A stretch of DNA of 64,000 nt from Histomonas meleagridis 2922-C6/04-290x (Eukaryota; Protista; Parabasalia): positions 62,001-126,000 of the forward strand of contig JAANOX010000275.1 of NCBI GenBank assembly GCA_020184695.1. The letters run 5' to 3'. The notes beneath the pieces are model-generated. The model had not been told where the DNA came from and did no database searches. It saw only the letters and a program-made list of their open reading frames with translations. The translations under genes and the position numbers were made by a program. Positions 1,663 to 52,358 of the stretch are shown one piece after another (the stretch's first letter is position 1; each line of letters opens with the position of its first letter).

Positions 1663-2050
1663 TTATCTAGATTATTTTGATTGAAAAAGAAAAGCACTAT
1701 TTTTAACTTAAAACATCACAATAATTAAATGCAATATATTCAGTCAGAACTTAATGCGAAAAAATGTTAAAACAAAAATATACTCCATGTTCCCAAAGCG
1801 TGGAGTAAAATTCAGTACAAAGTCCACTTTTGATAGATCTCATATAAAATTTCCTATCATATGTTGTAAAATTCACTTTTTGAATCATCTTATACAAATA
1901 ATTATTAGTTCACTCAAAAGTGGAGAAAGTGAATTCATCACAAATTTTGTATACTTTATATAACTCAAAATGTTGGAAAAAATGCCAACACCTCACATTC
2001 CATCGAACATCTATAAGTTCACAAATTTTAAATACTATAAACCGTTTTTT

Positions 2051-2633
2051 ATGAAAAACAAATTGTCAATTCAATTAATGCTCATAAAGTGCGTCGTTAT
2101 TGGTGACAAAGACATTGGTAAAACTGAACTGGCATATGTCTACAAAAATCACGAGCTTAACCACGATTATAATAAACGTAAAGTTACAATAGTTGAAAAT
2201 TATCAAATTGAAACTAATTTTAATAAGCATGACATAAAGATAAATGTATGTGACACATCAGGTCAAGAAGAATATGATAGGCTCAGACCAATTTCATATT
2301 CTGGTGCAGACGTTTTAATCGTATGTTTTTCCCTCTTTTCTCCAGAATCTTTTCGTAATGTCGATGAAATGTGGCTAAAAGACATTAGAGAATATTGCAA
2401 AGGAGTACCATACATTCTAGCTGGTTTTGAAGAATGACCTTATAGATAATATCTCTTCGGAAGAGATAATTACAAGACAACAAGGGGAAGCAATGAAAGA
2501 AAAAATTGGTGCTTATGGCTATATCGAATGCTCTGTTGATAAATACACAAGTGTAAACGAAGTTTTCGAATTAGCAATTCGGGCTGTCATCGCAAAAAAA
2601 GAAAAAAAATCCAAGGGATGTGAAATATATTAA
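2051..2633 (+). CDS. Atypical Rho/Rac-family GTPase, copy 1 (one 1-bp T-run frameshift near 2425, probably sequencing error)
   Basis: GDKDIGKT, DTSGQEEYDRLRPISY, LKND, ECS, polybasic KKEKKSKG + CEIY CaaX-like end; copy 2 is intact at this position. Confidence 0.8.
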
Positions 2634-2683
2634 AATTATACGGACCTTTTTTGAGCGAAGCTCAAAAAGTGTAGCTATAATTG

Positions 2684-2733
2684 AATTCTCAGAAAACTTT
2701 TTGATAATAATTTTGTGTAACAACTTTTTCAAT
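2684..2733 (+). repeat. 50-bp inverted repeat, left copy (partner 3494-3543)
   Basis: aattctcagaaaactttttgataataattttgtgtaacaactttttcaat is the exact reverse complement of 3494-3543; contains AACTTTTT twice (2695, 2722). Confidence 0.95.
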
Positions 2734-2746
2734 AGACCAGTGGTCC

Positions 2747-3265
2747 ATGAGCTACCACATGGATTTTAATAGTTTAATTCAAGCTAATGTATCTGTTGAA
2801 CAACAAAGGATTGCTGAAAACACACAAAGAACATATAATTCTAAGTTGCGTTCATATGACAATACAATGAATCAAATTTTTAATGCACCCGAATCATATC
2901 CCATTACTGAGAATAAATTACGTGCTTTTTTTAAATTTTATAGAAGTCAACACCCTCAAACAACCTATTCCTACCTTAAATCATTCGTCTCAGCTGTTGT
3001 ATCTTATTTAAGAAAAAATAACTTAGATGATTTTACGAAAACAAATAATTTTAAGTCGTACATGCTTGGCTTGGAATAAATAATGAAGGGGGATACATTA
3101 CCAAATGCGAAAAAGTATGTCACAATACAACTTATGATAAGACTTGCAAAAAGTACTAATCAAAATGTAAAAAATGAAATAGAACTTATGACAATTGAAA
3201 GTTTGTGCATTTATGGTTTTTTACGAATTTCTGAGGCGTGCAGATTCTTCATTTATATAACTTAA
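2747..3265 (+). pseudogene. Tyrosine recombinase N-terminal half, in-frame stop at 3077-3079, truncated after first catalytic Arg motif
   Basis: AENTQRTYNSKLRSY...TYSYLKSFVSAV resembles the core-binding (SAM-like) domain; the in-frame continuation has YGFLRISEA, the box I G-x-R-x-S-E motif. Confidence 0.75.
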
Positions 3266-3289
3266 TTCTTTCAATTTTGGTAACCATAG

Positions 3290-3385
3290 AAAAGGGGAAT
3301 AACTCTCTGGATTCACTCCAATTTTTTTAAGTTGCAATTTAAACTTTCTCCTAACTGTTCTATCACATAATGTAGAGACATTCAT
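3290..3385 (-). pseudogene. Inverted fragment resembling tyrosine recombinase segment preceding box II
   Basis: Manual minus-strand translation MNVSTLCDRTVRRKFKLQLKKIGVNPESYSP, like the helix-G-x-x-P-x-x-Y-S segment that precedes H-S-x-R; breaks where the His is expected. Confidence 0.55.
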
Positions 3386-3493
3386 GCTATCAGCGTTATA
3401 CTTCTATCCAAATGGTTGAGGCTGGAGATGCAATTACAGTAAAAATTTAATTAAAACTTAATTTAAATTTGTCCATATAATTTTTAATATGAG

Positions 3494-3543
3494 ATTGAAA
3501 AAGTTGTTACACAAAATTATTATCAAAAAGTTTTCTGAGAATT
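3494..3543 (-). repeat. 50-bp inverted repeat, right copy
   Basis: Exact reverse complement of 2684-2733. Confidence 0.95.
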
Positions 3544-4570
3544 AAAAAATATTTTTTGTAAAAAAAAATCTTTTTTGAAGGAAGCACGTCTCGGATCGGT
3601 TTTACAACCGTCACACATTGTCAATGTAACATCAACCACTTACTCAAAAAGTGGTATAATTGGTCATAAGCCATGCTACAAAAGACAACAATCATTCACA
3701 TGCTAAATAAACAACTCTCACATAAAACAGATTTATATTTAGATAAAGAAGTTAAAATATCTTTTCTGTACAAAACCAAAATGATGGAATAAAAATAATT
3801 CTTTTTTTAATATTTTAGAACGACTGTTTACATGAAGAACCAATGAGATTAAAAATTTGAGATTGTTCAATTAATTCAAGAAAAATTACCAAGTAAATGT
3901 ATGTTTTGTTGAGAATAATATTATAATAATTATCAAGAATAACTCGCTTAAATAATCATCGTGGCACATGTAAAAATCTCAATATTTTTTTTAATATTTT
4001 TAAATTTTCTCCATGATTTTTTTTCAAAATTATTAAACTTATTTAAAAGAACATTTTTTGAATTTTTCAGTGATTTAAAAACGTTCCTTTTTGTGGCATT
4101 TTCTCATATTATGACTGTTAATATATACAATAGAATTAGAAGTTGTAGGACATCCAAGTCTTTCCCATGTATTTTATTTTATTTTTTCCATGCTATAAAT
4201 CAGCTTTGTGCCAGAATATAATTTTCTTAAAATGTGATCTTTGTCGCTTATTTTTCTTCCGATGAAAATTTATTCCGCATCCAAAATTATTTTTGAATAA
4301 GCGAGCAAACGATAGAGATACGATAGAACATGTTTCTTTCAAATTCAGTTTTTGAATATTGATCCGATGATTATTCATTCATTTGATCCTATCGTTGAAT
4401 GACATTTATGGGTTCAATTAATTTTGCAAATGTTTTCAAGAAAATTCATACATTGTTAACTTAAAGCTTTAAGTTGATAGCATGCTATCAAAAAAATATG
4501 AAAGATGCCTTTAATAATCACGGATTAATAAATTCATTATTCATTTATTATGAAGTCCAAAGGTCGTTAT

Positions 4571-4591: not shown

Positions 4592-7375
4592 ATGTTTCAA
4601 TATTCCAATGATAGCAGTGAGTTAATTGAAAACTTTAGTAATCTCATTTCTCAAGACCAAACAGCTCGCGAATCATCTGAAATGGCAATTAATCAAAAAA
4701 TGGTTGCAGATCCTATTAGATTTATTCATGCCTGCGGAGAAATTCTCAGTCAAGATGGCCACCATGCATCAGCCTATTTTTATGCTTTACTATTTATTGG
4801 CAGAAGTATTACTCCAAATGATGTTGTTAAAATAGAATCAATCAGAAATATTTGGATGTCTACTGATGAAGACCAACGAAGATCTCTCAAGGATGCTATT
4901 TTTCGCGGTTTAATGTTTCCAGATCCAACTGTGAATAATGAAGCTATTCAAGCGTTTTGCAAATTATTTAAGATAGAAAGGGAATTCATGTTCCCTGATA
5001 TTGATCGTTTACTTCATCTCATTGGTAGTCCTGAATACAACAAAGCGATACACATCAATGGTCTCAAAGTTCTTAATGAAATTTGTGCAGAAAGTCTTCA
5101 TAATATTATTGGTCAATATGGTGAAGAAGTCCAAGGGGTCTACACAAGGGTTTTTAATTTTGTTGGTGGTATTTTTGTTGGACTTCAATCCAGCATTAAT
5201 TATAACCTCGACATTTGTATTATTTTATGCGAAATATGCACGACACTAATTAAGTATGCAGCACCACTCTTTTATCCACGTGAAGTTTTTGATAAGTTTG
5301 TTATACTTGTTCAAAATTATCTCAATATGATTGGTAATAATCCAACGAATGAACAACTAGAATTCCATCGAAATTTAATCCAGATTTACACTACACTCAC
5401 AATGAGATTCTATGAATACGATGGCTTCAAATTCATCGATATCGGTAACGCTATTCTCAATTATCTCTTTGAAGAGACAAACAATGGGAAACTCCTCAAC
5501 ATCCTTGATTTTTGGATCGAACTCACAAAGTTTGAAATGAAGAAAGTCAAAGCAATTCAATTTAAACAAAGATATGAAAATTTATTAGAAGAACGTCAAT
5601 CATCAATTAAAACTTCATTACCACATATGAAAGACGCACGTATTCATCATATGAGAGATTTAATTTTACCAGTGCTTGGTAATCTAGTTCCTCGTTTAAT
5701 ACAAATGTTAACATTTATGAGAGAAGATGATCAACAACCAGAAGATCCAAACCAACCAACCCAAATTTATGGGAAAGCATTTCAAGTTCTTTCTAACATC
5801 TATGAATATCATCCTGATTGCGTATTCTCTGAGATTCAAAAATATTGGTCGCAGAATAATCCTCTTGCTTCTCCATATCCAGTTCTCCATTCCTTATTAT
5901 TAGCAATAGCAATTATTTCACGTCCACCTCAATCACCTCAACAAGGAAATGATGTTTATAACTATTTAACAAGAAATCATTTAGCTGAAGGTCAATTTTT
6001 TATTACCAAATTTTTGGTTCAAGCAATTGATCATCCAATTAATCGAGTATCAGATACTGCACTTTATGTTATTAGTTTGTTAGAAGAAAACTTTGATTTA
6101 TATATGGCAGAGGAATTTCTTCAAATTTTAATTCAACAAATGCAAAAGAATTTTATGAGACATCCTATTATTACAGAACGAGTTTTTTCAGTTGTTAATC
6201 AAATAATTTTAAGATGTTATAATTTTAATCATATATCACTATATGAAAAATTTTATGAATATTTAGGAAACTTTTGTGCAAAATTTCTAGATTTTTTTAC
6301 TCAAACATTTAATGCTCCACAAAGTTTATTACAAACATGTTCTTATGTAATGATAAATTTAATTAAGTATGCACCAGACAGTAAAAAAGAAAGTGTTGAA
6401 AAAATATTTAACCAATCAATGTCAACTATAGATAATTCTAAAGATTTTCAAAACGCGGGTAACAGCGCAAACTTTGCCCTAGTATCAGATAGTATTTATT
6501 TTGTTACAATGTGTTTCCATCGATTTCCTGATTATTTTCGACATTATGGTGTATCTGTAGCACAAAAATTATTAGGAATAATCAGGTTTAAAAATGTGTT
6601 ATTTGAAGAATGTTTATATGGTTTAATATCTATAATATCTTCATTAGGTGTCGAAGCAAAACAAATATTTCAGGAAATGTCCAATTGTATTGATTATGCA
6701 TTAAAAACTAGAAGCCCTTCAACAATAAATACTACTCTTGCAGCACTTGCCGAATTATATAGAAATATTTTAGTTGAAGGACCTTCAAATGAATGCGGTC
6801 ATGAATTGTTGGAAAAGATCCCTACAACATTCGAAATAATATCCAATTGTTTGGATAAGTTTAACTTCACACGTGAAATTAACGTTAAAATACTTCGAAG
6901 TTTCGCTAAAGTTATTAAAACTGTATCTCCTATCTTGTGTATTGAAGATAGGGATCGAATAATGAATATCTTCGAATCGTTCTTAAATACACCACTTAAT
7001 CTAAATGATAAAGATGATGGAAAATTCGCACCCGAATTATACACTGTTGTAATTAGAGGTTACGAAGCTTTACTATATACAGTTAAGCCAGAAGAATTGG
7101 ATAATAGAAAATTAAAGAAATTTTTCATTAATACACTTGTTGATAAAATATCAAATATGACTGTACAATCGTTCGAATGCTTAAGCGCTATACTCGATTA
7201 CTTTAAGACTTATAATGACGTTTTTGGAACAAAAGGAAATATCATATTAAATAGAGCTAAAAATTACCAATTGGTGCTCTTCGCTTATTGTTTATCTTTG
7301 CCTGGTAGAAGAAAGGATGAATTGAACTTAAAACAAAAAGCGAAGGAATTATTTGAAATCATGAAAAAGGCATAA
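4592..7375 (+). CDS. Importin beta-1-like karyopherin (divergent)
   Basis: 927-aa helical ORF; N-terminus follows the importin-beta N domain; ILDFWIELTKFE and LVPRLIQMLTFMREDD resemble GIEFWSNVCDEE and LVPILTQTLTKQDEND of importin beta-1. Confidence 0.7.
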   Translation: MFQYSNDSSELIENFSNLISQDQTARESSEMAINQKMVADPIRFIHACGEILSQDGHHASAYFYALLFIGRSITPNDVVKIESIRNIWMSTDEDQRRSLKDAIFRGLMFPDPTVNNEAIQAFCKLFKIEREFMFPDIDRLLHLIGSPEYNKAIHINGLKVLNEICAESLHNIIGQYGEEVQGVYTRVFNFVGGIFVGLQSSINYNLDICIILCEICTTLIKYAAPLFYPREVFDKFVILVQNYLNMIGNNPTNEQLEFHRNLIQIYTTLTMRFYEYDGFKFIDIGNAILNYLFEETNNGKLLNILDFWIELTKFEMKKVKAIQFKQRYENLLEERQSSIKTSLPHMKDARIHHMRDLILPVLGNLVPRLIQMLTFMREDDQQPEDPNQPTQIYGKAFQVLSNIYEYHPDCVFSEIQKYWSQNNPLASPYPVLHSLLLAIAIISRPPQSPQQGNDVYNYLTRNHLAEGQFFITKFLVQAIDHPINRVSDTALYVISLLEENFDLYMAEEFLQILIQQMQKNFMRHPIITERVFSVVNQIILRCYNFNHISLYEKFYEYLGNFCAKFLDFFTQTFNAPQSLLQTCSYVMINLIKYAPDSKKESVEKIFNQSMSTIDNSKDFQNAGNSANFALVSDSIYFVTMCFHRFPDYFRHYGVSVAQKLLGIIRFKNVLFEECLYGLISIISSLGVEAKQIFQEMSNCIDYALKTRSPSTINTTLAALAELYRNILVEGPSNECGHELLEKIPTTFEIISNCLDKFNFTREINVKILRSFAKVIKTVSPILCIEDRDRIMNIFESFLNTPLNLNDKDDGKFAPELYTVVIRGYEALLYTVKPEELDNRKLKKFFINTLVDKISNMTVQSFECLSAILDYFKTYNDVFGTKGNIILNRAKNYQLVLFAYCLSLPGRRKDELNLKQKAKELFEIMKKA

Positions 7376-8183
7376 AAATAAATAAAATTAAAATTCATTT
7401 TAAGTTAACGAAAAGCAATAAGTTACACTGTCGTGAAAAAACATTTTTTAAGAGTTTGTTAGAAAATAAAAATTTTTATATGAAATTTGTGTTCTCTCTG
7501 TTCAATGACAACGTGTAAGTCTACAAGCTTTTCTCATTAAGCTGTGACTGATCACTTAAAAATGCAAAAATGTTCTTTTTAATAAGTTTAATAATTTTGA
7601 AAAAAAATCATGGAGAAAATTTAAAAATATTTAAAAACTGTTAAAATATTTATTTATGATGAGCTGCTTCATCTCAAACCACCTTCATCTTTTAAAATTA
7701 TGAAAATAAATTCATTATAACCATTAATTTTATTAATTAATTTATATATTGAGATTTTACATGTGCCACGATGATTATTTAAGCGAGTTATTCTTGATAA
7801 TTATTATAATATTATTCTCAACAAAACATACATTTACTTGGTAATTTTTCTTGAATTAATTGAACAATCTCAAATTTTTAATCTCATTGGTTCTTCATGT
7901 AAACAGTCGTTCTAAAATATTAAAAAAAGAATTATTTTTATTCCATCATTTTGGTTTTGTACAGAAAAGATATTTTAACTTCTTTATCTAAATATAAATC
8001 TGTTTTATGTGAGAGTTGTTTATTTAGCATGTGAATGATTGTTGTCTTTTGTAGCATGGCTTATGACCAATTATACCACTTTTTGAGTAAGTGGTTGATG
8101 TTACATTGACAATGTGTGACGGTTGTAAAACCGATCCGAGACGTGCTTCCTTCAAAAAAGATTTTTTTTACAAAAAATATTTT

Positions 8184-8766
8184 TTAATATATTTCACATC
8201 CCTTGGATTTTTTTTCTTTTTTTGCGATGACAGCCCGAATTGCTAATTCGAAAACTTCGTTTACACTTGTGTATTTATCAACAGAGCATTCGATATAGCC
8301 ATAAGCACCAATTTTTTCTTTCATTGCTTCCCCTTGTTGTCTTGTAATTATCTCTTCCGAAGAGATATTATCTATAAGGTCATTCTTCAAACCAGCTAGA
8401 ATGTATGGTACTCCTTTGCAATATTCTCTAATGTCTTTTAGCCACATTTCATCGACATTACGAAAAGATTCTGGAGAAAAGAGGGAAAAACATACGATTA
8501 AAACGTCTGCACCAGAATATGAAATTGGTCTGAGCCTATCATATTCTTCTTGACCTGATGTGTCACATACATTTATCTTTATGTCATGCTTATTAAAAAT
8601 TAGTTTCAATTTGATAATTTTCAACTATTGTAACTTTACGTTTATTATAATCGTGGTTAAGCTCGTGATTTTTGTAGACATATGCCAGTTCAGTTTTACC
8701 AATGTCTTTGTCACCAATAACGACGCACTTTATGAGCATTAATTGAATTGACAATTTGTTTTTCAT
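8184..8766 (-). CDS. Atypical Rho/Rac-family GTPase, copy 2 (1-bp A-run frameshift near 8597, probably sequencing error)
   Basis: Same protein as 2051-2633; the frameshift is at a different homopolymer, so the two copies complement each other. Confidence 0.8.
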
Positions 8767-9158
8767 AAAAAACGGTTTATAGTATTTAAAATTTGTGAAC
8801 TTATAGATGTTCGATGGAATGTGAGGTGTTGGCATTTTTTCCAACATTTTGAGTTATATAAAGTATACAAAATTTGTGATGAATTCACTTTCTCCACTTT
8901 TGAGTGAACTAATAATTATTTGTATAAGATGATTCAAAAAGTGAATTTTACAACATATGATAGGAAATTTTATATGAGATCTATCAAAAGTGGACTTTGT
9001 ACTGAATTTTACTCCACGCTTTGGGAACATGGAGTATATTTTTTTTTTTTTAACATTTTTTTCGCATTAAGATCTGACTGAATAAATTGCAATTAATTAT
9101 TGTGATGTTTTAAGTTAAAAATAGTGCTTTTCTTTTTCAATCAAAATAATCTAGATAA

Positions 9159-9656
9159 TTACTTAGATGAAATATTTAATGGTTTCCCATGAAGCGCTCT
9201 ATTAATGTATCTGTTTCCAATAGTAAAAAGAAAAAATAGATTTGGATCAACTGGGTAATGAAAAACATCAGAACCAAATTGACCAGAAACTATTTGAGCT
9301 TCAAGTAATGGATTTTCTGAAAGAGTTTTCGCAATTTTATTGAGTTTCTTCTTTTTTTGTACCTTTTTGTAATTATAATTTGGATTTTTATTTTTAAACT
9401 CAGAAAATAATTCTGATGCTTTTTGCTTATATCGTTCTTTTTCATCATCATTCATTTCTTTCCATTTTTGACTGATTATTTTCGTAAGTTCAACATTTGA
9501 TTTTCTTTCAAATTCTTCTGGAAGAGTTAATCGAAATTTTTCTGTAAATAAAAGAAATGCATTTTTTGGACGGCGTAATGAATGATCTTGAATTTCCCAC
9601 GCTTCGTCACTTTGTTGTGTCCAATTTGAATTAGATAATTGTTCATTTTCTTCCAT
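9159..9656 (-). CDS. Single HMG-box protein, copy 2
   Basis: Identical translation to 1165-1662; ATG at 9656. Confidence 0.85.
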   Translation of the reverse strand: MEENEQLSNSNWTQQSDEAWEIQDHSLRRPKNAFLLFTEKFRLTLPEEFERKSNVELTKIISQKWKEMNDDEKERYKQKASELFSEFKNKNPNYNYKKVQKKKKLNKIAKTLSENPLLEAQIVSGQFGSDVFHYPVDPNLFFLFTIGNRYINRALHGKPLNISSK

Positions 9657-9720
9657 TTTAAATTGTGTTTTAAAAAAGTGGAATATCAAAAAGTGGACCT
9701 TTTTTCTATCACAATACGTT

Positions 9721-11112
9721 ATGGAAGAGAAAGAAGAAGAAAACAAAGAAAAAATATTAATAAGAAGAGATACTCACAATTCACGCACACGTTCAGTTTT
9801 ATCACCTAGATATTCAAGTCCAAATAATGATGATTTTTCATTAAGTAAACCTCTTTTTCCATATCTTCCATCATTCTCACAAAAGACACGTAAAGAAAAA
9901 TATTTTTTGTTCATGAAGGCATTTGAAGAAAAAACATTACAAATTCGAACCAAAGAATTAAAGTCTTCTAATTCTCCAGTTGAACCCCTTCTTCCACCGG
10001 AAACGATTTCAGAAATATTAAACACACGTAATTCCTTATTTGAACGCGTTAAAGAAACCGAAATTCGAAAAACGATTTCACGGTCTAAAACAGAGTCAGA
10101 TCCCACACCTGCTAATTTTGTAAATAGTGAACAAATTCCAACATTTAATCCCCTTCAAAACACCAATTTTAATTCAAGAATATCACATCTCTCTAATTTC
10201 AAAATGATTGTTTCGTGTATTCTTATCCAACATCGAGTTTCAACTCGTCTTCAGCAACTTTCTCAATATCTTAGTACAATATCAACAGATTTTTTTGAAA
10301 CTCTTCAAAATTCTTCCTACGAAAAATCTGCTTTTTTAATTTTCATTCACTTCTTTCACTCAAAATTTCATGTTTACGTTCATTTCCAAAAAGCTTCAAT
10401 CCTTCCACAATGGATTCTCTTCCAACAGAACCCCCAAATATTGAAGCGTATCAAATTTCACGACCATTTCCACTTTATTCACCAGATTTTTGTTAAACAA
10501 TATCAACTTTCATCATTCAGTCGAACAGAAAAGACTGCATTTGTAGCAGCACCAATAGCGCAACCAAAAAAATTTCCTTATGTTAAAGAAGAGCAACCTA
10601 TTTTTGAACGTGTTCCATCGAACAACGAATTTCCAGAGAAAGAGAAAGAAAAAGAGAAAGAGAAAGAAATTCAACAAAAAATCACAAATTCACATTCAAC
10701 AAAATCATTTTGTTCACTTTCATTTACATTTTCTAATATATTAAATTATCCACGTTCGACACAATATTATTCATTTGATCCTTCATATTCCCTTATACCG
10801 CAAATTATGGAATTTCCTGATTTACAAAATGAAATCGGAAAATCTTCAATTCTTTCATTGCCAACATTAGAAGAATATGAAAAAGTATCAATTTCTAAAA
10901 GTTCGTGTGTCGCTCCATTTGCATTTGCTGGAGTTCCCGATTTCTTTTTATCAGAAATGAGTGGTCCTGAATCAATTGATTTGAAAGAACTCGAAAATGA
11001 CGATGATGTCGATGGAATTGATGTAACAATCAAAACGAGGCCTATTGGTGATTTTCTAACGAAGCCTTTACCTCAAAAAGAATCGAAGTCATGTATTAGC
11101 AGAGGTAGTTGA
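9721..11112 (+). CDS. Hypothetical protein (463 aa)
   Basis: Long open frame, acidic N-terminus, EK dipeptide run; no family recognised. Confidence 0.7.
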   Translation: MEEKEEENKEKILIRRDTHNSRTRSVLSPRYSSPNNDDFSLSKPLFPYLPSFSQKTRKEKYFLFMKAFEEKTLQIRTKELKSSNSPVEPLLPPETISEILNTRNSLFERVKETEIRKTISRSKTESDPTPANFVNSEQIPTFNPLQNTNFNSRISHLSNFKMIVSCILIQHRVSTRLQQLSQYLSTISTDFFETLQNSSYEKSAFLIFIHFFHSKFHVYVHFQKASILPQWILFQQNPQILKRIKFHDHFHFIHQIFVKQYQLSSFSRTEKTAFVAAPIAQPKKFPYVKEEQPIFERVPSNNEFPEKEKEKEKEKEIQQKITNSHSTKSFCSLSFTFSNILNYPRSTQYYSFDPSYSLIPQIMEFPDLQNEIGKSSILSLPTLEEYEKVSISKSSCVAPFAFAGVPDFFLSEMSGPESIDLKELENDDDVDGIDVTIKTRPIGDFLTKPLPQKESKSCISRGS

Positions 11113-42252: not shown

Positions 42253-45200
42253 ATGAAATCCACGAGAAAAAATAGGCGAACAAAGTCCAGGTCAAAAAAG
42301 CAATCACCAAAAACAATAAGCGAACCTTCATATGCTGAATCTCAAAAAAATACAAAAGATCCTATTATTTATAAAAATTATGGTTTATTTGCCACGTCAT
42401 CTCTTTCCATTCCTAACGAGCCAAAATTATCTCAAATTTTTCATCCTGAAAATGATGAATTCTTAAATTTTTTTTTAAAAAAACGAACGATAAAATCTGT
42501 TAAATCCATAATCAAACAAACACCTCCAAAACAACCACAACTACCACAAACATTACAAGAACATGATTCAAACTATAAAGGAAGTATGGCTGCCAAACAG
42601 TCTTCTGATTCATCAGAAGAAATAAATCAAGATTCCAAATCAGTCGGTTATAATGAACCAAGTGCCGAAGTAAATGAAGCAAGCATGGAATTTGATGATG
42701 AAGTAGTCATGCCACCATCAGATGATTTAGACGATTTTATTCCTCAACAAAATAGTCAAGAAGCGGAAATGCAAAATACTGAATGCAAAAATATGCAACA
42801 ACAGGAAATAAATTCACAAATAGAAGATCAATTATATAATACTAACGATATTCAAACAGTGCTAAGTAATGATGAATTTGATAATGACAACAATCAATTT
42901 CCGCCATCACCAATTAATGATGAATTTGATAATGATAAAAATCAAAGTCATGTACCAATTAATGATGAAATTGTAAATACTAATAATCAAAGTCAAATAT
43001 TCCCAATTAATAGTGAATTTATCAATACTAATAATCAAAGTAAAGAACCAATCAATAGTGAATTTATTAATCCTAATAATCAAAGTCAAGAATCAATAAA
43101 TAGTGAATTTATCAATACTAATAATCAAAGTAAAGAACCAATCAATAGTGAATTTATTAATGCTAATAATCAAAGTAAAGAATCAATAAATAGTGAATTT
43201 ATCAATACTAATAACCAAAGTCAAATATTCCCAATTAATAGTGAATTTATTAATGCTAATAATCAAAGTAAAGAACCAATCAATAGTGAATTTATCAATA
43301 CTAATAACCAAAGTCAAATATTCCCAATAAATAGTGAATTTATCAATACTAATAACCAAAGTCAAGAATCAATCAATAGTGAATTTATTAATATTAATAA
43401 TCAACGTAAAGAACTAATTAATAGTGAATTTATTAATGCTAATAATCAAAGTAAAGAATCAATAAATAGTGAATTTATTAATGCTAATAATCAAAGTCAA
43501 GAATCAATAAATAGTGAATTTATCAATACTAATAACCAAAGTCAAATATTCCCAATTAATAGTGAATTTATTAATACTAATAATCAAAGTAAAGAACCAA
43601 TCAATAGTGAATTTATTAATGCTAATAATCAAAGTCAAGAATCAATCAATAGTGAATTTATTAAAACTAATAACCAAAGTCAAATATTCCCAATAAATAG
43701 TGAATTTATCAATACTAATAACCAAAGTCAAGAATCAATCAATAGTGAATTTATTAATACTAATAATCAAAGACAAGAATCAATCAATAGTGAATTTATT
43801 AAAACTAATAACCAAAGTCAAATATTCCCAATAAATAGTGAATTTATCAATACTAATAACCAAAGTCAAGAATCAATCAATAGTGAATTTATTAATATTA
43901 ATAATCAACGTAAAGAACTAATTAATAGTGAATTTATTAATGCTAATAATCAAAGTAAAGAACTAATTAATAGTGAATTTATTAATGCTAATAATCAAAG
44001 TAAAGAATCAATAAATAGTGAATTTATTAATGCTAATAATCAACGTAAAGAACTAATTAATAGTGAATTTATTAATGCTAATAATCAAAGTAAAGAATCA
44101 ATAAATAGTGAATTTATTAATGCTAATAACCAAAGTCAAATATTCCCAATTAATAGTGAATTTATTAATGCTAATAATCAACGTAAAGAACTAATTAATA
44201 GTGAATTTATTAATGCTAATAATCAAAGTAAAGAATCAATAAATAGTGAATTTATTAATGCTAATAATCAAAGTCAAGAATCAATAAATAGTGAATTTAT
44301 TAATACTAATAATCAAAGTAAAGAATCAATAAATAGTGAATTTATTAATATTAATAATCAAAGTAAAGAATCAATCAATAGTGAATTTATTAATGCTAAT
44401 AATCAAAGTAAAGAACCAATCAATAGTGAATTTATTAATCCTAATAATCAAAGTCAAGAATCAATAAATAGTGAATTTATTAATATTAATAATCAAAGTA
44501 AAGAATCAATAAATAGTGAATTTATCAATACTAATAATCAAAGTAAAGAACCAATCAATAGTGAATTTATTAATCCTAATAATCAAAGTCAAGAATCAAT
44601 AAATAGTGAATTTATCAATACTAATAATCAAAGTAAAGAACCAATCAATAGTGAATTTATTAATGCTAATAATCAAAGTAAAGAATCAATAAATAGTGAA
44701 TTTATCAATACTAATAACCAAAGTCAAATATTCCCAATTAATAGTGAATTTATTAATGCTAATAATCAAAGTAAAGAACCAATCAATAGTGAATTTATCA
44801 ATACTAATAACCAAAGTCAAATATTCCCAATAAATAGTGAATTTATCAATACTAATAACCAAAGTCAAGAATCAATCAATAGTGAATTTATTAATATTAA
44901 TAATCAACGTAAAGAACTAATTAATAGTGAATTTATTAATGCTAATAATCAAAGTAAAGAATCAATAAATAGTGAATTTATTAATGCTAATAATCAAAGT
45001 CAAGAATCAATAAATAGTGAATTTATTAATACTAATAATCAAAGTCAAGAATCAATAAATAGTGAATTTATTAATACTAATAATCAAAGTAAAGAACCAA
45101 TCAATAGTGAATTTATTAATGCTAATAATCAAAGTCAAGAATCAATAAATAGTGAATTTATTAATACTAATAATCAAAGTCAAGAATCAATAAATAGTGA

Positions 45201-47814
45201 ATTTATCAATACTAATAACCAAAGTCAAGAATCAATCAATAGTGAATTTATTAATATTAATAATCAACGTAAAGAACTAATTAATAGTGAATTTATTAAT
45301 GCTAATAATCAAAGTAAAGAATCAATAAATAGTGAATTTATTAATGCTAATAATCAAAGTCAAGAATCAATAAATAGTGAATTTATCAATACTAATAACC
45401 AAAGTCAAATATTCCCAATTAATAGTGAATTTATTAATACTAATAATCAAAGTAAAGAACCAATCAATAGTGAATTTATTAATGCTAATAATCAAAGTCA
45501 AGAATCAATAAATAGTGAATTTATTAATACTAATAATCAAAGTCAAGAATCAATCAATAGTGAATTTATCAATACTAATAATCAAAGTCAAGAATCAATC
45601 AATAGTGAATTTATTAATACTAATAACCAAAGTCAAATATTCCCAATAAATAGTGAATTTATCAATACTAATAACCAAAGTCAAGAATCAATCAATAGTG
45701 AATTTATTAATATTAATAATCAACGTAAAGAACTAATTAATAGTGAATTTATTAATGCTAATAATCAAAGTAAAGAATCAATAAATAGTGAATTTATTAA
45801 TGCTAATAATCAAAGTAAAGAATCAATAAATAGTGAATTTATCAATACTAATAACCAAAGTCAAATATTCCCAATTAATAGTGAATTTATTAATATTAAT
45901 AATCAAAGTAAAGAACCAATCAATAGTGAATTTATTAATGCTAATAATCAACGTAAAGAACTAATTAATAGTGAATTTATTAATATTAATAATCAAAGTA
46001 AAGAATCAATAAATAGTGAATTTATCAATACTAATAACCAAAGTCAAATATTCCCAATAAATAGTGAATTTATTAATGCTAATAATCAAAGTAAAGAATC
46101 AATCAATAGTGAATTTATTAATGCTAATAATCAAAGTAAAGAATCAATCAATAGTGAATTTATCAATACTAATAATCAAAGTAAAGAATCAATAAATAGT
46201 GAATTTATCAATGCTAATAATCAAAGTCAAGAATCAATAAATAGTGAATTTATTAATACTAATAATCAACGTAAAGAACTAATTAATAGTGAATTTATTA
46301 ATGCTAATAATCAAAGTAAAGAATCAATAAATAGTGAATTTATTAATGCTAATAATCAAAGTAAAGAATCAATAAATAGTGAATTTATCAATACTAATAA
46401 CCAAAGTCAAATATTCCCAATTAATAGTGAATTTATTAATATTAATAATCAACGTAAAGAACTAATTAATAGTGAATTTATTAATCCTAATAATCAAAGT
46501 CAAGCATCACCACTAAATAATGAATTTGTTGCTAATAACCAAACCCAAATAGCACAGAATAAATCCGAGATCATAAAAACTTCACAAGGTCAAATTGCAC
46601 ATGCAACATTTCGCGCATCTAATCAAACCCCAATTCATAGTGAAGCCATTCATACAAATTTCCAAGTTCCAACCAATAATAATCACAATCAATCAGTACC
46701 AAGTGTACAAGTAATGTCGAATCACTTCGCATTCCTTAGCAAGCTTGCGTACAATATTCAGGCACTCAGTAAGGCAAATCTCAAGGAGTCAATTGCGTCG
46801 AACATCCAGCAAAAAAAGTTATCATTATTAACAACAAACAAAAACGCGATTCCACACAGTGATCCATATCATGTCCAATTTCCACAGCCTCTCATAACAT
46901 CGCATGTTCATGAACATCCAATGGCAACGCGTGCGAGCAGTAACTCACCTGATAACAAATTCTCGAAGAAAAACACGTCAGATATAAATGTACAACATGT
47001 AAAGCGAATAATTCCGATTCAACAGCAGAACCCTAGTGTACGCAAAGTAAGCTCCAAACAAAAGCCAAAGCAAAATAATGAAATTAAAAATTTAAAAATG
47101 ATAAGCCCAAGATTCCCAACAAAAAGACGATACGCCAGCATAGACGAAATAAACGAGTACGGCAGGTGGGCATGGGAGGCGAAGGAGAGGCCCAAAATCG
47201 TGACGGAGCCCGTAAATTCGCTTCTTATCGCGTACACAAACATGAACAGCATCGAACCGTCGAAAACCGCGAGTAAAGTACTGGAAAATGTCGGTTATGA
47301 TTTCGCAAAGTTTTTGGTGCTTGGAATACCTGGAGATAGAAGTACAAATCAAATAAGCGAAAGAAAACATCAGATAGGAAGTAAGGGTAATGGAGTGACG
47401 CCTGTTAGAGCATTTTCTAGATCAAAGTTTTACCCATGTCATAAATACTTTAGAGAAATTGATACAGAAACAAATTTGGCAATAGCTTACTTGGTTAGAA
47501 ATACAGGGAAAATATTGGCAAGATATGCTGGAACTAAATTAACAAAGAAATATGGAATGTCAGAATTAAACAAAATCGCAGAATCAGTTTGGAAGGAATA
47601 TCAAATTAAAAATTATGAAGGCGACAATGTCATGTTACCAAACGCTTTGGATAATCTGAGAAAATTATTTGCATTGTTTGACGCAATACAGAAAAGTAAC
47701 ATTAGTTATACGTGCGATGTTATGTCTATTCCAAATAACAAAAATATGGCCAGAGAAATGCCGTTGGATAAAATATTTCGGGATTATCTAATTAGAAATA
47801 ATTTGTTTGAATAA
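42253..47814 (+). CDS. 1853-aa Asn-rich tandem-repeat protein
   Basis: Uninterrupted ORF; basic N-terminus, ~1180-aa repeat region, unique C-terminal domain. Confidence 0.85.
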   Translation: MKSTRKNRRTKSRSKKQSPKTISEPSYAESQKNTKDPIIYKNYGLFATSSLSIPNEPKLSQIFHPENDEFLNFFLKKRTIKSVKSIIKQTPPKQPQLPQTLQEHDSNYKGSMAAKQSSDSSEEINQDSKSVGYNEPSAEVNEASMEFDDEVVMPPSDDLDDFIPQQNSQEAEMQNTECKNMQQQEINSQIEDQLYNTNDIQTVLSNDEFDNDNNQFPPSPINDEFDNDKNQSHVPINDEIVNTNNQSQIFPINSEFINTNNQSKEPINSEFINPNNQSQESINSEFINTNNQSKEPINSEFINANNQSKESINSEFINTNNQSQIFPINSEFINANNQSKEPINSEFINTNNQSQIFPINSEFINTNNQSQESINSEFININNQRKELINSEFINANNQSKESINSEFINANNQSQESINSEFINTNNQSQIFPINSEFINTNNQSKEPINSEFINANNQSQESINSEFIKTNNQSQIFPINSEFINTNNQSQESINSEFINTNNQRQESINSEFIKTNNQSQIFPINSEFINTNNQSQESINSEFININNQRKELINSEFINANNQSKELINSEFINANNQSKESINSEFINANNQRKELINSEFINANNQSKESINSEFINANNQSQIFPINSEFINANNQRKELINSEFINANNQSKESINSEFINANNQSQESINSEFINTNNQSKESINSEFININNQSKESINSEFINANNQSKEPINSEFINPNNQSQESINSEFININNQSKESINSEFINTNNQSKEPINSEFINPNNQSQESINSEFINTNNQSKEPINSEFINANNQSKESINSEFINTNNQSQIFPINSEFINANNQSKEPINSEFINTNNQSQIFPINSEFINTNNQSQESINSEFININNQRKELINSEFINANNQSKESINSEFINANNQSQESINSEFINTNNQSQESINSEFINTNNQSKEPINSEFINANNQSQESINSEFINTNNQSQESINSEFINTNNQSQESINSEFININNQRKELINSEFINANNQSKESINSEFINANNQSQESINSEFINTNNQSQIFPINSEFINTNNQSKEPINSEFINANNQSQESINSEFINTNNQSQESINSEFINTNNQSQESINSEFINTNNQSQIFPINSEFINTNNQSQESINSEFININNQRKELINSEFINANNQSKESINSEFINANNQSKESINSEFINTNNQSQIFPINSEFININNQSKEPINSEFINANNQRKELINSEFININNQSKESINSEFINTNNQSQIFPINSEFINANNQSKESINSEFINANNQSKESINSEFINTNNQSKESINSEFINANNQSQESINSEFINTNNQRKELINSEFINANNQSKESINSEFINANNQSKESINSEFINTNNQSQIFPINSEFININNQRKELINSEFINPNNQSQASPLNNEFVANNQTQIAQNKSEIIKTSQGQIAHATFRASNQTPIHSEAIHTNFQVPTNNNHNQSVPSVQVMSNHFAFLSKLAYNIQALSKANLKESIASNIQQKKLSLLTTNKNAIPHSDPYHVQFPQPLITSHVHEHPMATRASSNSPDNKFSKKNTSDINVQHVKRIIPIQQQNPSVRKVSSKQKPKQNNEIKNLKMISPRFPTKRRYASIDEINEYGRWAWEAKERPKIVTEPVNSLLIAYTNMNSIEPSKTASKVLENVGYDFAKFLVLGIPGDRSTNQISERKHQIGSKGNGVTPVRAFSRSKFYPCHKYFREIDTETNLAIAYLVRNTGKILARYAGTKLTKKYGMSELNKIAESVWKEYQIKNYEGDNVMLPNALDNLRKLFALFDAIQKSNISYTCDVMSIPNNKNMAREMPLDKIFRDYLIRNNLFE
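42960..46520 (+). repeat. Coding minisatellite, roughly 75-80 units of 45 or 48 bp
   Basis: Unit Q-[SR]-[KEP/KES/QES/KEL/QIFP]-INSEFIN-[TAIP]-NN; higher-order block repeated at offset 1503 bp. Confidence 0.97.
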
Positions 47815-49458: not shown

Positions 49459-51190
49459 TCAAGGTATAACACTAATATTTGTGTCAATTCCTTTTTGTTG
49501 AAGAAGTAAATTTATTATTTCAGTGTTACCTTTTTCATTTGCTAAGATGAATGATGTTTTAAATGTTCCAAATAATTTCCGAATATTATTTTGAAATATC
49601 AAATAATTTAAATATTTTTAAATAAAATAAATAATTATCTTTTTCATTAATTGCAATATCTTCATTAGCAAGAAGTAATTTAACTATTTCAATGTGTCCA
49701 TTTAAAGATGCTATCATAAATACAGTTCTAAATAAAGTAATTATTCTCCAAATATCATATCAAAACAGAATATTATCAAAACAAATTTCAAACAAAATAT
49801 ATTAACATTTTTATTATGTATATTAATTCCATCTTGCATAAGAAGTAATTTAACTATTTCTGTATGACCATTTTTAGATGCCCAAATAAGTGCTGTATTA
49901 AATAATTTAAATAATTTCCAAATATTATTTTGAAATATTTAAAAATTATTAAAATAAAATTTAAACAAAGCAAATATATATTTTTAGCATTAATATCAAT
50001 TCCTTCTTGTTCAAGAAGTAATTTAACTATTTCTGTATGACCATTTTTAGATGCCCAAATAAGTGCTGTATTAAATATTTTAAATAATTTCCAAATATTA
50101 TTTTGAAATATTCAAAAATTATTAAAATAAAATTTAAACAAAGTAAATATATATTTTTAGCATTAATATCAATTCCTTCTTGTTCAAGAAGTAATTTAAC
50201 TATTTCTATATAACCATTCCAAGATGCATACATAAGTGCTGTTATTAATATTTTAAATAATTTCCAAATATTTTTTCGAAACGTCATATTATTAAGAAAA
50301 ATATAAAATAAAATTAATAAATATCTTTAGCATTAATATCAATTCCTTTTTGAGCAAGGAGTAATTTAACTATTTCTGTGTAACCTTTTATGGATGCTAA
50401 AATAAGTGCTGTCAAAAATAATTTGATTAATTTCCAAATATTATATACAAACATCAAATTATTAAAATAAGTATAAAATTAAACAAATAAATGTTTTTAA
50501 CATTAACATCAATCCCTTCTTGTCTAAGAAGTAATTTAACTATTTTTATATTTCCTTTTTGAGATGCCAAAATAAGTGCTGTGTGAAATTTTATGAATAA
50601 ATTCCAAATATTATTTTGAAATATTAAATTATTAAAATAAATTTCAAATAAAATAAATAAATATCTTTAGCATTAATATCAATTCCTTCTTGTTCAAGAA
50701 GTAATTTAACTATTTCTATATAACCATTTTTAGATGCTTTTATAAGTGCTGTTCTAAATAATTTAAATAATTTCCAAATATTATTTTGAAATAGTCCAAA
50801 ATTATTAAAATAAAAATAAAATAAAATAAATAAATATTTTCCCCATTGATATCGATTCCTTTTTTCTCAAGAAGTAATTTAACTATTTCTGTATTACCTT
50901 CTTGAGATGCTAATACAAGTGCTTTATTAAATAGTTTGAATGATTTCCAAATATTCTTTTAAAATAAAAAATTGTTTAAATAAGTATTAAATGAAGAATA
51001 TAAATATTTTTGGCATTTACATCAATTCCTTTTTGTTTAAGAAGTAATTGAACCATTTCTGTATTGCCTTTATAAGATGCATAAATAAGGTCTTCATTAA
51101 AAATTGTAAATAATTTCCATATTTTAATTTAAAATTTTAAATTATTAAAATAAAAATTGAAAATTAATAAACAATTTTTTGTAAAGATAT
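49459..51190 (-). repeat. Tandem array: 87-nt ankyrin block + 82-86-nt AT-rich spacer
   Basis: Block starts at 51095, 50925, 50752, 50582, 50412, 50242, 50069, 49896, 49726, 49557 (periods 170,173,170,170,170,173,173,170,169). Confidence 0.95.
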
Positions 51191-52358
51191 ATATCCTTCA
51201 TTGATAAGATAGTTAAAAAGTTCTTCATTACCTAAAAATGTTGAATTTTCAGAAAAATTTATTGATATTGGATGTTTTTCAAAAAAATATTGTAAAGTGA
51301 ATATTACCAGTTTCAATTGATTCAATAATAAGATATCTATTGAGTTTCATTCCTTCTTTTTCTAAAAATGAAAGAATGTTAAAACTATTATACAGAATAC
51401 ACTTTATTGCCAATTGTGTTAAATTTATGATTTCAATATTACCTTTTCCATAAAGATAATGAAAGATATCATTTCGATGGAATTCAATTGCAGTTTCATA
51501 TGCATCTTCAAATGATGAATGATTCTGCTCACATAAATGAATAATTTCTTCATTTCCACCTGCAACTGCATATTTACCTGTATTTGTTACATTTGCACCA
51601 TTCATAAGTAAATATTTAAAACATTTAACTGAAGAAAAAAATGCTGCATAATCAATTAATGTAATATTATCTTTATTAATAAAAGAACATCTTTCATAAA
51701 GTGATGGTTCAATTGTTTGATTAAAATCAAAATTTGTTTGTGATGATATTTCTTGAAGTTTTTCTATTTCATCATTTCGAATTATTTTTGCAATTTCATT
51801 TGGATTATGTCCTTCTTTAATATATTTTTTATGAAGTTCCCAATCATTCTTTGATAGCTCATTGAAGTTTTGAAAAAAGTAAACTGAGAATTCGTTGGAT
51901 TTAAATTTTTCAATTTCTTCATATGAAAAGCATTGGGCAAAATAATAAGTTTTTTTCAATTTACATATTTTTGAATCAATTAATTCATTTTCAATCATTT
52001 TTTCAACAAGATAATTTGATTCTTGGGTTCTAATAAATAACAGAAATTTGGTAAAAACAGTTATGAATTTATAACGCAAATTATTTGTAATTTCATTTTC
52101 TTTAATATCAATTTTTTGTAAATATTGGAAACATAATTTATAAACATTTTTTGAAACAAAATATGAATATATAATTCTACATGTAATGAGTATGAATGAA
52201 TACGCTAATTCTGCATAAAAGTAAAATAAAAAAATGGTCGATTCTATTGATTTATCAATGTTATTTTCATTTAAATCAAAAATAACATTCTCGAGGTTTT
52301 GTAACATTTGTAAGTTTTTCTTATAATCGGGTGTTACCTGACTTTGGTTTCCACCCAT
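49459..52358 (-). CDS. DUF3447-type ankyrin-repeat protein interrupted by ten non-canonical spacers
   Basis: MGGNQS start with TCATT Inr; IDYAAFF...YAVAGGNEEIIHLCEQ domain; T-run slip near 51280; ten open ankyrin blocks ending at TGA 49459-49461. Confidence 0.7.

Follow-up and report, generated by a model that had tools for sequence, protein, structure and literature searches.

A probable Crypton-like family of tyrosine recombinase elements with inverted repeats and a terminal palindrome, described from a defective copy in Histomonas meleagridis

Cryptons carry a tyrosine recombinase as their whole gene set and are bounded by terminal direct repeats of 4-6 bp that match the target; they are described as being without terminal inverted repeats and are treated as a polyphyletic class (PMC3212892, PMC13465315). 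A tyrosine recombinase combined with inverted terminal repeats is found in the DIRS1-type retrotransposons (PMC13465315). Here we describe a 912-bp insertion in a 64,000-nt stretch of Histomonas meleagridis 2922-C6/04-290x (contig JAANOX010000275.1, positions 62,001 to 126,000 of the forward strand), the whole of which is referred to below as the window. The insertion is likely to be a copy, now defective, from a Crypton-like family of DNA transposons, the sole gene of which encodes a Cre-like tyrosine recombinase of ~300 amino acids (aa). The best reading of the ends is that the family moves in a Crypton-like mode, to which a hairpin palindrome and inverted repeats are added.

An inverted duplication makes up the first 10.8 kb of the window, and in it two near-identical arms of 3.3-4 kb surround a unique centre of 3.5 kb (Table 1). 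The element occupies 2636-3547 and is present in the left arm only. On the left side the two arms agree up to and including 2635, the agreement resumes at 3541/3548, and ATTAAAA stands at both junctions and once at the empty site. The first-pass annotation, made from the letters of this DNA alone, had proposed such a pair of filled and empty sites, with exact boundaries at 912 bp and a 7-bp repeat, and the arm alignment and the empty joint in short-read contigs bear this out. The short-read evidence consists of public contigs from four runs, which were compared with the window; X1 and X3 are DNA runs of the same organism, and X2 is a run of a second study. The joint of the empty form, which skips 912 letters and leaves 7 letters that fit on either side, is present in X3 at a depth of 388, roughly that of a single copy, and in X2 at a depth of 24. 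The filled form is represented in X2 by a contig that covers 2606-3081 with no differences and begins 30 nt outside the left junction; one letter under the 31-letter rule for bridging, it lends weak support as a bridge.

With the element removed, the two arms are 98.96% identical across 3082 aligned columns, and their differences are bunched in a few low-complexity patches. From 1774 to 3985 the arms have no substitution at all and are separated by three 1-base homopolymer indels only; the absence of substitutions in 2.2 kb around the site indicates that the duplication is young. The depth of the short reads confirms that the arms are present twice, with 1047-1125 in the arms and 568 in the unique centre in X1, and 900-1010 and 389-449, respectively, in X3. 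We have also considered that the filled/empty pair could be an artefact, two alleles or strains having been folded back on each other by the assembler, and homopolymer errors of the long-read style at 2425 and opposite 2217 would fit with such an origin. However, the twofold depth of the arms in two DNA runs, the roughly single-copy depth of both the empty joint and the rearranged junction within the element (see below), and the runs of the second study, which also show the empty joint and filled-side contigs starting 30 nt outside the left junction, make this explanation extremely unlikely. The duplication and the filled/empty pair are therefore taken as real.

The target lies at the end of a host gene for a GTPase of the Ras/Rho family, the TAA stop codon of which (2631-2633) falls inside the repeat, as noted in the first-pass annotation. 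An extra T at 2425 breaks the open reading frame (ORF) of this gene in the left arm. It is missing from all short-read contigs (reported as "left out 1" in X1 and X3), and the right arm reads through the point opposite to it, so that the frameshift is probably an assembly error. The right arm contains another extra T opposite 2217 (about 8598), where the short-read contigs report none. Both look like long-read homopolymer errors, and since the contigs contain neither, both arms probably hold an intact Rho gene. Errors of the same kind may also lie behind other frameshifted genes of this assembly. The target of the insertion carries little information, as ATATTAAAA is common, with 13 occurrences in the window versus 10.4 expected. 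The proposal that the element targets the 3' ends of genes is unsupported and rests on one case.

The element contains inverted repeats that match at 50 of 50 positions, each with two copies of AACTTTTT; a 32-mer taken from them occurs exactly twice in the window and was absent from 100 shuffles. The asymmetry of the repeats pointed out earlier is also confirmed: the left one begins 48 bp inside the element, while the right one ends 4 bases before 3547. The 48 bp outside the left repeat are, by homology to relatives described below, a decayed terminal palindrome, which the first-pass annotation had not recognised. It keeps the outer TTATA/TATAA and 9+9 bp of the stem (2648-2656 and 2660-2668, with a GAA loop and the centre GCGAAGC), and the middle parts of its arms have decayed. 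Folded as single-stranded DNA, it has an energy of -7.4 kcal/mol (z = -3.3).

The recombinase gene of the window copy is not intact. Its first part (2759-3246) gives tblastn matches to the family proteins P0012, P0004, and P0002 with 43-44% identity and E values of 1e-37 to 1e-43, matches the Pfam family Phage_int_SAM_1 with E = 0.004, which is under the family cut-off, and is 84% identical in DNA to positions 240-715 of L085, a metagenome locus of the European Nucleotide Archive (ENA). An in-frame TAA at 3077-3079 interrupts it. The last 22 codons, which are 64% identical to the C-terminus of P0012 and whose DNA is 87% identical to L085 1071-1232, are in the expected orientation. The middle is replaced by two reversed fragments, and codons 161-199, with the lysine of SKTDQ, and 243-278, with HSFRKG and GRW (P0012 numbering), are absent. 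Four of the six catalytic residues are thereby gone, those of the K, HxxR, and W regions, and only the segments with the first Arg and the Tyr remain in frame order. The window copy is thus internally rearranged and, judging from its sequence, catalytically dead, both of which had escaped the first-pass annotation; an intact version of it would measure about 1130 bp.

On the plus strand the reversed fragments stand in the order A, B, which a single inversion cannot yield. The short-read contigs have loose ends at 3246, 3297/3301, and 3381/3383, and the contig across the A/B junction has a depth of 742 versus 568 for a single copy, which puts the rearranged form at about one copy per genome. 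Microhomologies are found at the three breakpoints (GATT, GAATA, and ATTC), and the simplest reading is that template switching during replication or repair made the rearrangement. As a separate observation, these microhomologies bear a weak likeness to the GAATT(A) end of the element. One joint in X2 and X5, reported as "goes back 141", corresponds to the normal B-to-A order of intact copies, possibly with a graph cycle in addition, and was not used.

Table 1. Positions of the element, its parts, and its surroundings in the window (a strand of + or - is given where it applies)
Feature	Position	Strand	Basis
Left arm of the duplication, filled	1 to ~4066		Self-alignment; short-read depth ~2x unique centre
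Right arm of the duplication, empty	~7558 to 10824		Self-alignment of the window
Host gene of the Ras/Rho GTPase family, stop inside the target	2060-2633	+	Pfam Ras, E = 7e-26
Left ATTAAAA, including host TAA; relatives also have the ATTA part at their left junction	2629-2635	+	Arm alignment
Remnant of the left-terminal palindrome	2636-2683	+	Homologous perfect palindromes at the same place in L086, L204/205, L207, L084, L206
Left inverted repeat, 50 nt, two AACTTTTT	2684-2733	+	Self-alignment
Small second palindrome GACCA-G-TGGTC, just upstream of the ORF; larger in relatives	2735-2745	+	Compare L084 (GACCAC...GTGGTC), L086, L204, L206
Recombinase codons 1 to ~160, N-terminal core-binding domain to first catalytic Arg (LRISEACR)	2759-3246	+	tblastn
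Reversed fragment A, codons ~200-220 (YSPFLWLP...)	about 3247-3300; P0012 match 3301 to 3239	-	tblastn, L085 alignment
Reversed fragment B, codons ~221-242 (...VRRKFKLQLKKIGV)	about 3301-3381; P0012 match 3379 to 3314	-	tblastn, L085 alignment
Codons 279-300 with catalytic Tyr (CYQRYT), TAA stop 3448-3450	3382-3450	+	tblastn
Right inverted repeat, final ATT = first three bases of right ATTAAAA	3494-3543	+	Self-alignment
Right ATTAAAA	3541-3547	+	Arm alignment and short-read contigs
Empty site, one ATTAAAA including the Rho stop codon (8186-8184)	8182-8188	-	Arm alignment; joint 2628>3541 in X3 and X2

The identity of the element is established through its relatives. An exhaustive search with a 110-aa N-terminal piece returned 74 proteins, many of them full-length at ~300 aa. 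In all 16 full-length relatives that were aligned, R153, K181, H250, R253, W276, and Y284 are invariant, that is, the R, K, H-x-x-R, H/W, and Tyr of the tyrosine recombinase superfamily are complete. The same 16 all match the Pfam family PF00589 (Phage_integrase) at E <= 1, the best with 5e-11, and a profile of the family compared with solved structures gives Cre on top, with E = 8e-10 and both domains covered. The assignment as a tyrosine recombinase element with no reverse transcriptase, made in the first-pass annotation, is upheld by these matches and by the single ORF. At E <= 1, Pfam gives no domains in the 16 members beyond the tyrosine recombinase ones, and DUF3504 (CryptonA), GCR1_C (CryptonF), and DUF3435 (Starship) are not among the matches.

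In a profile search of a large collection, the family is tight, with 19 clusters scoring from 443 to 219 bits, followed by a gap down to 117 bits. All members are on metagenome or read-archive contigs under ~2 kb, and there is no named entry from reference databases in the 19 clusters. Annotation pipelines therefore probably miss the family. In a protein atlas, the clusters nearest to the family consist of recombinases from eukaryotes (molluscs, sponges, and oomycetes) with a length of ~330 aa, which we take as a lead only; the host range so far consists of the Histomonas of the window and of metagenome contigs. The closest relative in DNA, L085, is 84-87% identical to the window copy and collinear across the region that is scrambled there. 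The organism of the window has multiple copies of the element, with a summed depth of ~9-45x that of a single copy in the short-read contigs, and other copies continue the ORF beyond 3246, where the loose end reads ...LMWKEITYDQ. No description of the family was found in the searchable literature, and papers on tyrosine recombinases in trichomonads and the 2026 genome paper on Tritrichomonas foetus make no mention of such elements.

The contigs that encode P0012, P0004, P0002, P0019, P0083, P0079, P0080, P0022, and P0015 each have one ORF of ~900 bp between inverted repeats of 28-67 nt, with no second ORF between the repeats. Intact members measure 1.1-1.3 kb and have the order ATT(A) core, terminal palindrome, left inverted repeat, small second palindrome, recombinase ORF, right inverted repeat, and ATT(A). 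Most relatives have a palindrome of 45-75 nt outside one inverted repeat. In L086, L204/205, and L206 this palindrome shows clear homology to 2636-2683 of the window, the common features being TTATRYGG at the start, GAGCGAAGC in the centre, and ATAATKS at the end. The motif GCGAAGC is a classic DNA mini-hairpin of unusual stability (PMC13037366). Within 19.4 kb of family loci, it or its complement is found 8 times, and 7 of these 8 occurrences are at palindrome centres; the 64-kb window has two, one of which is within the element.

Two variants of this layout are observed. The loci L204 and L205, from two samples, encode the same recombinase, and their left ends within the element (L204:78-138 and L205:55-115) differ only in the 11-nt centre of the palindrome, which in one of them is the exact reverse complement of that in the other (flip/flop). 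Their left flanks differ upstream of ATATTA, and their right flanks are identical. In L206 the terminal palindrome is found downstream of the right inverted repeat (L206:1024-1140), so that, unlike in all others, the segment with the ORF between the repeats has the opposite orientation with respect to the palindrome. Judging from the sequences, both the flip/flop centre and the inverted segment would follow from recombination between inverted sites. At L207:52-118 there is, in addition, a second palindrome centred on GCGAAGC, ~360 bp upstream of the element's own, which may be a fragment of another copy.

The junctions of the relatives were read by anchoring on the conserved ends, L206 being read on the reverse strand. 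The left junction can be placed in six relatives, and in five of these also the right one. ATTA or ATTT is found at the left junction of seven insertions and at the right junction of the seven that can be placed there, the window copy included in both counts. The next three bases vary. They agree at all three positions in the window (ATTA AAA on both sides), at two in L086 (ATTA CTA on the left and ATTA ATA on the right), at one in L001 (ATTT AAA and ATTA GAA) and likewise in L204 and L205 (ATTA GCA and ATTA TTA), and at none in L207 (ATTA GAA and ATTT CAT). L206 has ATTA GCA on the left, its right junction being beyond the contig, and L085, truncated on the left, has ATTT TTT on the right. 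The first-pass annotation had compared the 7-bp repeat with a tyrosine recombinase crossover core in size; the 7 bp are not a fixed core, as only ATT(A) recurs. Since the inverted repeats of L086 are perfect over 67 nt, the unequal 7-mers are not a matter of decay. In L204/205, L207, and L086 the palindrome begins directly after ATTA, which makes the left bases 5-7 in these loci part of the element. The element of the window starts with AAATTATA and its target has a run of A, and the identity over the full 7 bp may therefore be partly a coincidence. The core is often preceded by ATAT (window, L204, L205, L206, and L001), which in the empty site of the window belongs to the target. A CAAAAAG found 10 nt from the core on both sides of the window copy was considered as a pair of binding arms and was dropped, as it fails in L086 and L205.

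These junctions also bear on a different mode of movement, in which a cut-and-paste transposase of the DDE type, encoded elsewhere, would move the element, ATTAAAA would be a true 7-bp duplication, and the recombinase would be cargo or a resolvase, as in Tec and MarCry. The perfect 50-nt inverted repeats and the exact 7-bp flanking duplication would fit this mode, for which MarCry-1_FO, a Crypton moved by a mariner transposase, is a precedent (PMC3212892). However, the left repeat is not terminal, being preceded by 48 bp of the element, the right 7-mer overlaps the inverted repeat by its first three bases, and no relative has a second ORF. Furthermore, ATT(A) recurs across unrelated insertions, and the flanking 7-mers, which share it, are often unequal: they differ in L001, L204/205, L207, and also in L086 (ATTACTA/ATTAATA) despite its perfect 67-nt repeats. 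We consider a DDE transposase as the mover very improbable.

With the recombinase as the mover, we infer that the element would leave as a circle, its right and left ends being joined at the core. One long palindrome of 150-195 nt would then arise in the circle from the terminal palindrome and both inverted repeats, with the core 25-35 nt off its centre, and the opening of the circle off-centre would explain the 48-bp asymmetry. The recombinase would exchange strands between the core of the circle and an ATTA target, preferably ATATTA, after which the core would stand at both junctions and the palindrome would stay at one end. The circle junctions were assembled by a script from the right end, the 7-mer, and the left end, and were then folded. 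The junction of the window copy forms one continuous palindrome of ~150 nt with -67 kcal/mol, that of L086 one of ~195 nt with -100 kcal/mol, and that of L205 one of ~190 nt with -94 kcal/mol. The four copies with a terminal palindrome range from -67 to -100 kcal/mol, and L001, which is without it, gives -41 kcal/mol. The core pairs, with a small bulge, with its mirror partner at the boundary between palindrome and left repeat; in L001, where there is no inner palindrome, it lies in a ~19-bp spacer between the ends of the repeats.

The folding raises the question of whether the palindrome itself is the working substrate. A folded single strand or a cruciform would in that case integrate, one pair of strands being exchanged next to ATT and replication finishing the reaction. 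In bacteria, tyrosine recombinases acting on the integron attC site and on the attP(+) hairpin of the CTX phage use a structured palindrome, and the single-stranded substrate is demonstrated there. By analogy, the present family also combines a tyrosine recombinase with a palindrome of varying sequence and kept pairing; the single-stranded substrate, established in the bacterial systems, is a hypothesis only in this family. The long palindrome at the circle junction, the stem of which is slightly mismatched where the core lies, would be in line with this proposal, as would the arm sequences that differ among relatives while pairing is kept, the GCGAAGC at palindrome centres in 7 of its 8 occurrences, and the flipped centre in L204 and L205, and a single strand exchange would explain why ATT(A) alone is constant. 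Nevertheless, palindromes can equally be symmetric double-stranded binding sites, the putative single-stranded intermediates are deduced from the palindromes, and L001 has the same ends without a terminal palindrome, so that we regard integration through a hairpin as unlikely.

The arms of the window also give information on when the element moved. A dead copy is present in one of two near-identical arms, which means, unless the damage is of later date, that after the duplication the enzyme of another copy either put it there or removed its twin. On this reading a recombinase has been active in this genome recently, with a dead copy as its substrate and presumably in trans. Alternatively, both arms could once have held the element, and one of the two could have been lost by slippage or recombination between the 7-bp direct repeats without any recombinase. 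Such direct repeats do flank the insert, the empty site holds exactly one of them, and there would no longer be a need to mobilise a dead copy in trans. Loss of 912 bp across 7 bp of homology is, however, rare, and no other such deletion is seen in the arms; we find this history quite unlikely, and it would in any case alter only the history and not the identity of the element.

Several observations weigh against movement of a dead copy by a recombinase acting through a circle and an ATT(A) core. A circle junction is found in none of the contigs of the four runs, although contigs cannot show its absence. The rearrangement could have occurred in place after the insertion, and the rearranged junction, present about once in the genome, gives no sign that the dead form was amplified. 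With regard to the core, L084 has no shared core at the expected place and does not fit the ATT(A) scheme. An empty site is available for the window copy only; homology to this copy was used to set the ends in the relatives, whose ATTA could be owned by the element rather than by the target. Finally, the overlap region of tyrosine recombinases is usually 6-8 bp, and a constant core of 4 bp is shorter than this.

Compared with the described systems, the family is closest to the Cryptons (Goodwin et al. 2003; Kojima & Jurka 2011, PMC3212892), which are defined by their gene content and ends. It shares with them the tyrosine recombinase as the only enzyme, with neither a reverse transcriptase nor a DDE transposase, the proposed movement by circle excision and site-specific integration, and short direct repeats at the termini that agree with the target and are interpreted as a recombination substrate rather than as a true duplication (ATTAAAA here and ATT(A) at both junctions in five relatives). 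The first-pass annotation had stated that the ends do not match Crypton. As the target-matching direct repeat is a Crypton hallmark (PMC3212892, PMC13465315), that part of the statement falls, and the part that stands is the presence of inverted repeats, 33-67 nt long in the family and 50 nt in the window copy, together with a terminal palindrome in most members. The family differs from the Cryptons further in being far smaller (1.1-1.3 kb) and from CryptonA and CryptonF in the absence of DUF3504 and GCR1_C, respectively.

The Cre/loxP system of phage P1 is similar in the enzyme, Cre being the best structural match and the catalytic set being R-K-H-R-W-Y with Trp in place of the second His; the identity to Cre is low, and in contrast to the 13-bp arms and 8-bp spacer of loxP, no compact symmetric site surrounds the core here. 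As in the yeast 2-micron plasmid with its FLP enzyme, a tyrosine recombinase gene lies between inverted repeats, and the segment bounded by the repeats is inverted in L206, as recombination between them would produce. The present element is a chromosomal transposon and not a plasmid, and its inversion is deduced from one relative. The likeness to the DIRS1-type retrotransposons ends with the recombinase and the inverted repeats: DIRS elements are ~5 kb long and contain an internal complementary region as well as a reverse transcriptase and RNase H, none of which is found here, and the 912 bp of the window element with one ORF are likewise without the reverse transcriptase and RNase H of DIRS, Ngaro, and VIPER. 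Starships have a captain with DUF3435 and cargo of tens of kb; the present elements are of ~1 kb and have no DUF3435.

Some observations on more distant recombinases and on the surroundings of the element are added here. A metagenome scan returned mostly distant recombinases with 22-35% identity. The WLWD01 contigs (L012, L013, L015-L017, and L071, 20-365 kb) contain many recombinase ORFs of ~305 aa that are 23-25% identical to the family. These multi-copy loci were considered as members and rejected as a different kind of element, there being no inverted repeats within 1 kb of the recombinase copies; they may be a separate Crypton-like family in another eukaryote. L004 has a recombinase ORF with 35% identity to the family, and a near-perfect palindrome (75-2-75, at L004:1-152) lies immediately upstream of it. 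The right end of this locus is beyond the contig, and among the distant metagenome matches only L004 shows such a left palindrome. A 15-mer from the boundary between palindrome and repeat was also compared with viral contigs and was discarded, as its >115 matches in unrelated viruses (L088-L167) are due to chance.

The centre between the arms contains an intact gene for an importin-like protein of 927 aa (4592-7375), and arrays with periods of 45/48 nt and 170/173 nt are found at 42867-46000 and 49470-51270 of the window. One X5 contig has a run of T before 3985, which suggests a polyadenylated transcript of the minus strand ending at 3985. From the uneven coverage and this one poly(T) contig end, X2 and X5 look like RNA runs. 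If so, there would, tentatively, be low-level transcripts from the 3' end of the Rho gene into the element, and transcripts of the empty arm would reach at least 110 nt past the Rho stop, in which case the TAAA at the stop is not evident as a poly(A) signal.

Cryptons are poorly understood, their ends being hard to define, and we know of no transposition step that has been shown biochemically. The family described here offers sharp landmarks, namely inverted repeats, a terminal palindrome, base-exact ends, a short ATT(A) core, and a target motif. With an enzyme of ~300 aa and an element of ~1.1 kb, an assay could be built from synthetic parts. The palindrome and the repeats seem to undergo further reactions, as indicated by the flip/flop centre and by the inversion of the ORF segment. 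If the hairpin were the substrate after all, the family would be a eukaryotic counterpart of integration at integron attC or by the CTX phage, and the same enzyme would also flip the centre of the palindrome and the ORF segment.

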